From the sequence record NC_041973.1: DNA of 64,000 bases. The stretch is one strand, 5' to 3'. The notes below the pieces were generated by a model. The model saw only the letters and a list, made by a program, of their open reading frames with translations. It was not told the origin of the DNA and did no database searches. A program made the translations under genes and the position numbers. Numbering within the stretch: the stretch's first letter is position 1; every line of letters begins with the position of its first letter. Positions 5,412 to 52,856 of the stretch are shown here, in pieces.

Positions 5412-5445
5412 CATAACAGGAGAGCTTCGGCTCTCCTTTATGCCG
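5412..5445 (+). terminator. Hairpin + TTATGCCG element
   Basis: aggagagc-ttcg-gctctcct-ttatgccg. Confidence 0.75.
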
Positions 5446-32722: not shown

Positions 32723-32744
32723 AGATCGTAGATCATTTTATTCC

Positions 32745-51106: not shown

Positions 51107-51526
51107 ATGCCACAGCGTGGTACAGCACCGAACTTTGCAGAATTCACACAGCAAGAACTGGCAGAGAAGGTAATCCCGATACTGCCAGATTACTGTAACC
51201 GTCTTTGTGGGGTCATGATCAGTACATGCTTTGCGCATCGCGTTGGACTTACTGACAAATCTGTACTGCGTTTTGCTGAGTATCACTTCAACCCCACGCC
51301 CGACCTAGCGCGACAAACAGACTGGTCGGTGGAAGTGCGAAGTGAGCAGTGTGTGGTTTATGAACTCAACATCCCCAAGTTTGTCCACGAGGCTGGATTG
51401 GTAAAGCAGTTTTTAGATATCCTCTCCAGTCATCTTGAACTTTATTTCACTGACAGTAAGGTACTCCTCGGCCATGTACTCCCGCCGTGCTTCCTTACTA
51501 TCCGCATTGAGAAAACAACACCATGA
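51107..51526 (+). CDS. Hypothetical protein (same family)
   Basis: FVHEAGL....L...L....VLLG. Confidence 0.55.
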   Translation: MPQRGTAPNFAEFTQQELAEKVIPILPDYCNRLCGVMISTCFAHRVGLTDKSVLRFAEYHFNPTPDLARQTDWSVEVRSEQCVVYELNIPKFVHEAGLVKQFLDILSSHLELYFTDSKVLLGHVLPPCFLTIRIEKTTP

Positions 51527-52290
51527 ATCTTTATCTCGTCTCTGACAGTCGTTATACCCCACCGGGTGATTTCTACAACAACTGGTTAGTCCACGCTAAT
51601 AGTCGTGACAGTGCCGCGATGTTGTGTAATTCACGTTGTCTGGTTGATACCTTTGAGATTGGTAGCCTGAACTACAACAACGGCGAACTGATCATGATGC
51701 ACAAGACCGTCCAGCACACGGATGAACCGCGTCTGAAGCAGAAGGTTGGGGATGCACTGTATTATCCTTTAACGGTATCACCTGACAGCAGTGCCTTTGA
51801 CCGTATCATTGGTGAGATCGTGAACAAAGCCGCCTCTCCGTTACCGGAAGGTGTCTCTGTCGATCGCCTTCTCATCAATGCTGACAGTCCTGAAGCGCTG
51901 TTCTTTATCTCGCGCCATGACTTTGGTGCATCACGTTGTTACTACAAGATCCCCAGTGAACTCGACAGCCAAATCTCTAAACTGCTGGACTTCAATAAAG
52001 GTGAGCGTATTCCCCGTACGTCTCACGAACCGGTTGTGCTCTCCTGGCGTAGTCGTCTCTCCCTCATGATCGCGCGTCAGCATGATGATGCGTACAACCA
52101 TGAGAAGCTGGAGATCTACCGTAAAATGGCATTTGATCTGGTAGCTACCGCTACCGTCGAGGATAGCGCCACGCCTGTTGCCCTCGACCCTGATCAACCG
52201 GACTTCAAAGTCTGGATGCCGGGAATTGATGAAGAGAAGATCCATCAAGCGCTGGATACGTTAGGTGCGCCACGTCAGTTAGGGGAATAG
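51523..52290 (+). CDS. Hypothetical protein
   Basis: 255 aa, ATGA overlap with the previous gene. Confidence 0.6.
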   Translation: MNLYLVSDSRYTPPGDFYNNWLVHANSRDSAAMLCNSRCLVDTFEIGSLNYNNGELIMMHKTVQHTDEPRLKQKVGDALYYPLTVSPDSSAFDRIIGEIVNKAASPLPEGVSVDRLLINADSPEALFFISRHDFGASRCYYKIPSELDSQISKLLDFNKGERIPRTSHEPVVLSWRSRLSLMIARQHDDAYNHEKLEIYRKMAFDLVATATVEDSATPVALDPDQPDFKVWMPGIDEEKIHQALDTLGAPRQLGE

Positions 52291-52311
52291 CCTATTATAT
52301 AGGTTGTAACT

Positions 52312-52431
52312 CAATGGGATGGTGATCTTTTATCTTCCGCGGGTGAGGGTTAGAACCCGGCTGTGGCCGCATAGCCAAAGTCGGTTAATCAAAGTCGACG
52401 GATTTGGATTACCCGGCGTGACTTGTCATTG
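52312..52431 (+). ncRNA. Candidate structured non-coding RNA (four-way junction)
   Basis: Closing stem 52338-46/52409-18 encloses three hairpins; outer stem 52312-17/52426-31; intergenic; ends before a hairpin-TTATGCCG element. Confidence 0.5.
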
Positions 52432-52478
52432 TTTCACTTTGTTCTACTACACAAACAGCTCAACTCTCTCATAATTCA

Positions 52479-52508
52479 AGGGGTGGGGTAACTCACCCCT
52501 TTATGCCG
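52479..52508 (+). terminator. Hairpin + TTATGCCG element
   Basis: aggggtggg-gtaa-ctcacccct-ttatgccg. Confidence 0.75.
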
Positions 52509-52523
52509 CAAGGATCTATTATC

Positions 52524-52856
52524 ATGCAGGAATTCTTCAAAAGCTACGGCACGTACTTCTTTGATGTACTCATGTTTATCATGGTGTTCGCCTGGTGTTT
52601 CTGTGGCAGTGGCGGTACACGTCATGACAAAAACAAATGGTTGCGTTACGGCGCACCTGTTGCATTTGGTCTTTTTGTTGTGCTGGTCGTCCACGGGTTT
52701 GGTGCATTTGATCGTTATCTGGAAAGGAATAAGTGCGCTGACTTACCAATAGGTGTCGGTGTAATGATTGAAGACCGCTGCTACAAGCGCGTTGATGGAC
52801 CCGTGTACATATCCGCCGACAGTACCGTGTACAAGGAGAGCAATGTACATGACTGA
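52524..52856 (+). CDS. Small two-TM membrane protein
   Basis: Start MQEFFK behind AAGGA; two hydrophobic helices. Confidence 0.6.
   Translation: MQEFFKSYGTYFFDVLMFIMVFAWCFCGSGGTRHDKNKWLRYGAPVAFGLFVVLVVHGFGAFDRYLERNKCADLPIGVGVMIEDRCYKRVDGPVYISADSTVYKESNVHD

Follow-up and report, generated by a model that had tools for sequence, protein, structure and literature searches.

The region between the genes gp60 (51523-52290) and gp61 of Erwinia phage vB_EamM_RAY (Agricanvirus; referred to below as RAY), a nucleus-forming jumbo phage of the Chimalliviridae, contains an element of approximately 190 nt, which is very probably a functional structured RNA. The analysed window, within which this region lies, comprises the first 64 kb of the phage genome (NC_041973.1), and its coordinates are identical to those of the GenBank record. 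Taken as a whole, the observations are best explained by a new family of structured RNAs, encoded on the + strand and acting in trans as a discrete small RNA, an explanation that we regard as moderately probable. The element invariably lies directly upstream of a phiKZ-type terminator, occurs once per genome (a single copy was found in RAY) and is independent of the genes that flank it.

Four sequence types of the element were compared: those of RAY, AH06 (a phage from Erwinia billingiae), pEa_SNUABM_37 (an Erwinia phage; SNU37) and SA002 (a Salmonella phage). Gene gp61 of RAY is annotated from an ATG at 52503, which is located inside the terminator tail TTATGCCG. As judged from the nucleotide sequence, its true start is likely to be the ATG at 52524, preceded by AAGGA (52511-15), in agreement with the layout observed in AH06 and in SNU37 and SA002. 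Provided that gp61 begins there, the gap between the genes is 233 nt long, as given in an initial annotation of this locus, which had proposed a cloverleaf-like non-coding RNA and all of whose quoted sequence strings were located in place.

RNAalifold predicted a consensus fold of the four types that consists of three helices, P1, H2′ and H3. The conserved architecture, as it emerges from this alignment, is a row of separate hairpins and not a cloverleaf. The locus is organised as follows:

52291-52312, + strand: 5′ box, comprising the palindrome CCTATTATATAGG and GTTGTAACTC, defined by alignments of the four types.
52315-52339, + strand: hairpin P0, with pairs 52315-19/52335-39 and 52321-25/52330-34, predicted in minimum free energy (MFE) folds.
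52340-52359, + strand: hairpin P1, a 5-bp stem (52340-44/52355-59; CGGGU/ACCCG) with the 10-nt loop GAGGGUUAGA.
52364-52377, + strand: hairpin H2′, a 5-bp stem (52364-68/52373-77) with the loop GCAU (GCAY across the types), from the RNAalifold consensus.
52380-52417, + strand: hairpin H3, of 15 bp in RAY, interrupted there by two 1x1 internal loops; without interruption in SA002.
52418-52478, + strand: mostly unpaired tail, with the conserved boxes UCAC..UGUU..CUAYACAA at 52434-52454, identified in alignments.
52479-52508, + strand: phiKZ-type intrinsic terminator, a 9-bp hairpin (52479-87/52492-500) with a GUAA loop, followed by TTATGCCG (52501-08).
52511-52526, + strand: ribosome binding site AAGGA and likely start ATG (52524) of gp61, outside the RNA, marking its downstream limit; the same layout is present in SNU37 and SA002.

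Folding of the + strand of positions 52291-52508 gave −69.9 kcal/mol (z −2.8 against dinucleotide shuffles), compared with z −0.6 for the − strand of RAY; the + strand gaps of SNU37 and SA002 fold with z −3.5 and −3.8, respectively. Among the 100 cells defined by 25 pairs in four types, 97% contain standard pairs, and 10 of the 25 pairs have changed on both sides, with covariation present in all three helices. When the 3′ partners were slid by 1-3 columns, only 0-2 both-side changes and 21-44% pairing were obtained, and in column shuffles 0-3 of 500 trials attained the values observed for the share of paired cells, the covariation score and the count of covarying pairs. A structure-blind MAFFT alignment placed the core in the same columns and returned identical counts, which argues that the covariation is not a product of fitting the sequences to the model. 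The compensatory events fall on three branches (RAY versus AH06, SNU37 versus SA002, and the deep branch). In a four-hairpin model of RAY and AH06 all 35 pairs are kept, and the differences found in AH06 are either unpaired or preserve pairing; the single-sided changes from RAY to AH06 are one G-C to G·U and, in the terminator, one G·U to A-U. Moreover, G·U pairs occupy 14 of the 100 pair cells. Since these would be C·A mismatches on the opposite strand, the RNA corresponds to the + strand, whose sense is that of the surrounding genes. This comparative evidence, which is solid and comes from few sequences, shows that the fold is maintained by selection. Together with the strand-specific G·U pairs and the lack of a conserved open reading frame (ORF), the covariation bears out the earlier proposal of a structured non-coding RNA.

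Helix P1 has 5/5 pairs in all four types, with one compensatory change (the observed changes are U-A to G-C and G-C to G-U); its invariant 10-nt loop reads RAGGGUUAGA across the types. In H2′, three of the five pairs have changed on both sides, and the inner pair in RAY is C·A. An alternative 7-bp helix, ggctgtg/catagcc (52359-65/52370-76), can form in RAY and AH06. In hairpin H3, six pairs differ on both sides when the four types are compared, and two U-A to C-G compensatory changes separate RAY from AH06; 96.7% of its cells are paired, and its apical sequence, CAAAGUCG, is invariant. Its middle part corresponds to a pairing that the initial annotation had put forward as an alternative (taatcaaa with tttggatta at 52403-11) and that stands: it is retained in RAY, AH06, SA002 and SNU37 at 8/8, 8/8, 7/8 and 6/8 positions, respectively, with compensatory changes. 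The MFE fold of SNU37 reproduces P1, H3 and the terminator unaided.

The purine-rich 5′ strand of hairpin P0 pairs with AUCUUCC in RAY (AUCUYCC across the relatives). P0 also forms in the MFE fold of SNU37, and shows one-sided changes only, with no double covariation. The 5′ strand resembles an extended Shine-Dalgarno (SD) sequence (GGUGAUC in RAY, GAGGUGAUC in phage Simmy50, AAGGAGGUGAUC in SA002), which we take to be complementary to the 3′ end of 16S rRNA. Together with AUCUYCC it resembles an internal SD/anti-SD duplex, and no conserved start codon follows. These strands are located at 52321-52339 in the window and at approximately 2338-2352 and 2183-2196 in the loci L034 and L002. Additional sequence in the tail of RAY-type phages contains AACUCUC (52462-68), which is complementary to the loop of P1. 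RNAfold proposes, at p 0.8 for both RAY and AH06, that 52345-51 pairs with 52462-68, a structure alternative to P1. A shorter equivalent was recognised by eye in SNU37 and SA002. A pseudoknot between the P1 loop and the tail is therefore possible in the modelled structures.

Comparison (blastn) with 50,697 phage records revealed that only 17 Agricanvirus records carry the gap, apart from one chance match of 28 nt. The gap of AH06 is 92% identical to that of RAY at the DNA level, and the homologues of gp60 and gp61 share 31% and 35% protein identity. Over 105 kb, the median identity of 200-nt windows between RAY and AH06 is 70%, compared with 93% for the gap (approximately the 99th percentile), which thus forms a conserved island between flanks that blastn could not align. 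Contigs from four metagenome runs contain the core with one substitution and one 1-nt deletion, next to a much changed end of gp60. More distant homologues were found through synteny. The exonuclease encoded by gp64 of RAY is weakly homologous to proteins encoded at the same map position in pEa_SNUABM_37/48 and SA002, and a gap of 232-236 nt is located 1.1-1.4 kb upstream of the exonuclease gene in these phages. The portal protein of SNU37 shares only 50% identity with that of RAY (all other sampled chimalliviruses, <30%), and the element was not aligned when RAY was compared by plain blastn with the complete SNU37 genome. It was detected in SNU37 (E value 1.5e-8) and SA002 (5e-9) by a covariance model for which only RAY and AH06 had been used, and a model of the four types found a single copy in every one of their genomes.

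The four-type model detected no homologue in ten further chimalliviruses (phages of Ralstonia, Escherichia, Klebsiella, Serratia and Salmonella, and additional ones of Erwinia); a 19-bit match inside a coding sequence (CDS) of phage Eowyn lacked H3 and was judged spurious. Exact and degenerate patterns in IMG/VR and GTDB genomes, and the exonuclease protein used as an anchor in IMG/VR, yielded no further homologue. A search of JGI metagenomes with an 18-mer returned 20 loci, all of them chance matches of 18-19 nt, several in eukaryotic telomere-like repeats of the TTAGGG type. On the basis of these searches, the family appears to be restricted to one clade of nucleus-forming jumbo phages, namely Agricanvirus (including AH06), pEa_SNUABM_37/48 and SA002. 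Screening of the window against Rfam 15 gave nothing better than a chance hit overlapping the element (mir-921, which scored 16 bits where the gathering score is 80; E value 5.4), and the homologous loci produced chance matches only. The most fitting interpretation of the element is a non-coding RNA family that is new among phages and belongs to a kind already known, phage-encoded structured small RNAs.

The downstream terminator called in the initial annotation is supported by two lines of evidence. First, the terminator consensus of phiKZ, mapped by ONT-cappable-seq, is a hairpin followed by TTATKYYGT (PMC10914365), and the hairpin with TTATGCCG fits it. Second, a k-mer scan of RAY intergenic DNA revealed strong enrichment of TTATGCC(G), nearly always behind a GC-rich hairpin: of the TTATGCC sites, 53 of 69 (RAY) and 55 of 80 (SNU37) directly follow a hairpin of −10 kcal/mol or better, compared with 8% of random positions. 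For 41 of these 53 RAY terminators the distance from the previous ORF is 26-67 nt; here it is 211 nt, the extra distance being filled by the structured RNA. A few other RAY terminators outside the window (173227, 160337 and, on the − strand, 265373) are also unusually far (173-367 nt) from the previous called ORF, and possibly mark further non-coding RNAs or unannotated small ORFs.

The late-promoter motif of phiKZ is TATG, in which G is the start (PMC4666361), and TTATGCCG was considered as such a promoter; the mapped terminator consensus of phiKZ makes the terminator the primary reading. It is possible, from the motif, that transcription may also start at G 52505 and serve gp61, which begins 20 nt further with no promoter in between. 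Throughout the genome, terminators composed of a hairpin and TTATGCC(G) are often directly followed by a ribosome binding site and a start codon, with no intervening promoter (in the window at 5438, 16143, 27585, 35276, 40434, 46075, 47094, 49559, 53076, 61722 and 62947). Either such terminators leak, or their TATG doubles as a start signal.

At the opposite end of the element, all four types retain the 5′ box motif TATT[AG]TATAG..GT[AT]GTA(A)CTC, which occurs only once in the genome of RAY. It does not belong to the abundant promoter-like motif of this phage (CAGACCTAYATNAC..GTGAT; approximately 25 strong sites), against which it scores −23 bits. This motif family (gcAGAaaaTntCAGACCTA[CT]ATnAC, then GTGAT after 4-6 nt) occurs in the window at 32744, 40044 and 57511 and at about 20 further sites genome-wide, nearly always in intergenic DNA and pointing at the next gene; judging by sequence, it may constitute an early or middle promoter class of RAY. 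The core of this family, ATTAC, is reminiscent of AAanTTACc, the middle motif of phiKZ (quoted in PMC4666361). The 5′ box and the tail box CUAUACAA show exact 8-bp complementarity in SNU37 and SA002 and 6/8 in RAY and AH06. A closing stem formed by them could not be established, as shuffled 5′ segments paired equally well with the tail in 25, 3 and 18 of 150 trials.

In six relatives of RAY (Simmy50, Special G, MadMel, Mortimer, Ea35-70 and Desertfox), a gene for a 196-aa homing endonuclease of the HNH_3 type is inserted between the positions corresponding to 52297 and 52313. It spans 1608-2198 in locus L002 and 408-998 in locus L010, and is intact but unannotated in Desertfox. The only Pfam domains recognised in its product are PF13392 (HNH_3) and, weakly, PF05551. 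The insertion splits the palindrome of the 52291 region and replaces the sequence up to 52329. By hand pairing, the 5′ strand of P0 in these phages can be provided by the final codons of the HNH gene. From 52330 onwards, the core is identical to that of RAY, save for one substitution at 52445 (Desertfox, Mortimer). No copy of the HNH gene is present here in RAY, Bosolaphorus, Rebecca, Deimos-Minion or AH06, nor at the loci of SNU37 and SA002. Homing-endonuclease genes tend to settle beside conserved sequences, and the arrival of this gene at the edge of the element fits that habit. In AH06, the thymidylate synthase gene is annotated in two pieces around another HNH homing-endonuclease gene (L007, 7027-9021), which suggests an intron like that of T4 td.

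The flanking genes differ between the clades on both sides of the element. The upstream genes (gp60 of RAY, SNU_50 and SA_50) show no detectable similarity between clades, and the HNH gene resembles none of them; SA002 has an extra upstream gene that is not present in SNU37. Downstream, likewise, no similarity between clades was detected for gp61 and SNU_51/SA_51: RAY and AH06 encode a 110-aa membrane-like protein, and SNU37 and SA002 a 210-aa protein faintly similar to gp65 of RAY. The element therefore behaves as a unit of its own, and not as the leader or trailer of one gene. Four other stretches of RAY, outside the window, that still align with SNUABM_37 are partly non-coding (166941-167211, 216443-216768, 256175-256523 and 267833-267985); these alignments may represent further conserved non-coding elements or missed small genes.

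If the element is a functional structured RNA, its action as a discrete small RNA in trans is somewhat probable, and its length of approximately 170-210 nt and the absence of a conserved ORF fit such a role. According to this model, (i) the RNA would be released as a discrete molecule of about 170-210 nt, (ii) its 3′ end would be made by the phiKZ-type terminator, (iii) its 5′ end would arise either at a start of its own close to the 5′ box or when the upstream message is processed, and (iv) it would act through its invariant unpaired parts, i.e. the loop RAGGGUUAGA, the apical CAAAGUCG and the tail sequence CUAYACAA, on a partner that could be a complementary RNA or a conserved protein of either phage or host. 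Conserved unpaired boxes are present in the four-type alignment. A dedicated trans-acting component of the infection cycle, e.g. a decoy or scaffold that captures a host defence protein, a protein of RNA metabolism or a phage protein, is a more specific and doubtful proposal. Mimicry of a host RNA received no support from blastn against E. coli genomes, a search insensitive to short motifs, and mimicry of a CRISPR repeat is unlikely, as H2′ differs between the clades.

Several points weigh against a discrete trans-acting RNA. No promoter is recognisable and the 5′ box is unlike the common promoter-like motif; the HNH gene disrupts this box in six viable relatives. The U-tract after the terminator is short. 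The numbers of 8-mers complementary to the loop and boxes in the RAY and SNU37 genomes are near chance (4-14 found, 8-18 expected). The covariation comes from only four sequence types on three independent branches, and searches of public runs and of the literature yielded no RNA data for these phages.

The constant position before the terminator and the lack of a promoter keep alive another explanation, which we consider possible with low confidence: a cis-acting element at the end of a transcription unit that modulates the terminator, or protects or processes the message. Variants of this model include processive antitermination like that by the put RNA of HK022, attenuation and a riboswitch-like sensor; the element would then set the read-through into gp61 and the block containing the exonuclease gene. 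In all four types, it stands directly before the terminator, which is followed within approximately 20 nt by an SD sequence and a start codon, with no promoter between them, and the insertion of the HNH gene between the upstream gene and an unchanged core fits a co-transcribed element. However, the downstream gene differs between the clades, unlike those of riboswitches, and many other RAY terminators directly precede an SD sequence and a start codon without such an element. Furthermore, no conserved alternative pairing with the terminator was found (a GGGUGAG repeat, noted by eye in RAY and AH06, has no counterpart in SNU37 and SA002), and no ligand or factor is known.

Homing endonucleases typically cut conserved DNA near their insertion point, and the HNH_3 gene at the 5′ edge of the element in six relatives, together with the palindromic 5′ box of RAY, might point to an element acting as DNA, i.e. 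a homing target, a site bound by a protein, or a signal for replication or packaging. This is very unlikely. Compensatory changes that pass through G·U intermediates, and a share of 14% G·U cells restricted to one strand, are consistent with RNA but not with duplex DNA; the element is kept in SNU37 and SA002, which have no HNH gene at the locus; and a homing target would account for about 20-40 bp, not about 190. A replication origin was rejected, as no turning point of GC skew is located here. Even less probable is a self-cleaving ribozyme, a role also suggested in the initial annotation, or an RNase-processing module that splits the upstream message from the downstream RNA. The invariant nucleotides are concentrated in loops and junctions, as in small ribozymes, but the Rfam 15 search returned no ribozyme family at E values up to 5-10, and the hairpins stand separately in a row with no evident catalytic junction.

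The initial annotation had drawn the RNA as a tRNA-mimicking cloverleaf, a decoy for anticodon nucleases. It can be drawn in RAY, where the closing stem (52338-46/52409-18) has 9/9 pairs, and the P1 loop contains UUAGA, which we presume to resemble a T-loop pentamer. The phages encode RtcB (gp048 in RAY) and, as annotated in AH06, an RNA 2′-phosphotransferase, and RAY carries only one tRNA gene (Asn, GTT; 165666-165741, outside the window). The closing stem nevertheless breaks in the relatives, with 7/9 pairs in AH06, 6/9 in SA002 and 5/9 in SNU37 and no compensatory change, as does hairpin 3 (gtcgg/tcgac), which retains 5/5 pairs in RAY and AH06, 3/5 in SA002 and 2/5 in SNU37, while the competing H3 covaries. 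Hairpin 1 (gggt/accc) is complete (4/4) in RAY and AH06; it has 3/4 pairs in SA002 and SNU37 and competes with the conserved P1. Hairpin 2 (ggctgtg/catagcc), with 7/7 pairs in RAY and AH06, falls to 6/7 in SA002 and 5/7 in SNU37; the shifted H2′ carries three compensatory changes. As far as the alignment goes, these two are RAY-clade alternatives to P1 and H2′. An outer stem (caatgg/tcattg) has no counterpart in SNU37 and SA002, in which the 15-nt stretch containing its 3′ arm is absent. ARAGORN found no tRNA in the window, and neither ARAGORN nor Rfam (E values up to 10) returned anything tRNA-like in any of the four types, so that a cloverleaf decoy is extremely improbable.

A small protein gene, i.e. 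the 51-codon ORF at 52319-52474 or a shorter version of it, has hardly any probability. The RAY group and AH06 retain an open frame of 43-51 codons, and SNU37 and SA002 have another of 29-42 codons, but no single reading frame is conserved: (i) the ATG is lost in Deimos-Minion (2-nt deletion) and in HNH-bearing phages, e.g. Simmy50, (ii) indels of −1 and +1 shift the frame locally in AH06, (iii) GGGTTAGA is read in different frames by the two clades, (iv) no start codon or SD sequence is conserved across the relatives in the ORFs of the gap, and (v) substitutions follow base pairing and not codon position.

Nucleus-forming jumbo phages have been studied almost wholly through their proteins, and their RNA biology is barely charted. 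The structured RNA described here has outlasted the turnover of all neighbouring genes and the arrival of a selfish nuclease gene, in phages of two host genera. It adds a candidate family to RNA catalogues and offers a small, mutable target for defining the role of a non-coding RNA in these phages, of which RAY is already open to cell biology. If the proposed trans-acting role is true, no structured non-coding RNA of a chimallivirus would have had its function defined before this one, and the family would have no catalogued relative.

Among known systems, HEARO, the omega RNA of IscB, is similar in being a structured RNA beside an HNH nuclease gene, whose 3′ end it overlaps in some genomes. 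In the phages studied here the nuclease is a 196-aa HNH_3 protein containing only HNH-type Pfam domains, and the RNA also occurs without it. Membership of this group was rejected, since the nuclease is not obligate (it is absent from RAY, AH06, SNU37 and SA002) and no Rfam match was obtained; HEARO was presumably among the families that gave none. The element was likewise not assigned to riboswitches or attenuators, as it shows no conserved sensor-terminator pairing and no consistent class of downstream gene. With tRNAs and tRNA-like RNAs it shares several adjacent hairpins and the UUAGA loop pentamer, but lacks a conserved acceptor-like closing stem and the geometry of an anticodon arm. Small RNAs of enterobacteria that derive from 3′ untranslated regions (UTRs) or share terminators have a structured 5′ part, a conserved single-stranded stretch and an intrinsic terminator shared with the end of an mRNA. 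The RAY element differs from them in having no long U tail of the Hfq type and no identified seed-target pair, and in being transcribed, presumably, by phage RNA polymerases inside the phage nucleus.

The phiKZ-type terminator corresponds to the last 30 nt of the element (52479-52508), and accounts for the 3′ end of the feature only. The element also resembles small RNAs of other chimalliviruses. Terminator-bounded, CDS-free small RNAs were mapped in 201phi2-1 and phiKZ by ONT-cappable-seq, e.g. sRNA005 of 201phi2-1 and the small RNA upstream of gp182 in phiKZ (PMC11512511, PMC10914365). Like the RAY element, these are shorter than 250 nt, bounded by a terminator, free of CDSs and encoded by nucleus-forming jumbo phages, some of them in intergenic regions; their position and fold are shared across genera, and the function of those mapped is not known. 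The RNAs of 201phi2-1 and phiKZ were mapped experimentally, are mostly derived from 5′ UTRs and are tied to a conserved downstream gene, whereas the RAY element, known from comparison alone, is larger, composed of multiple hairpins, independent of its neighbours and confined to one clade of Erwinia and Salmonella phages.

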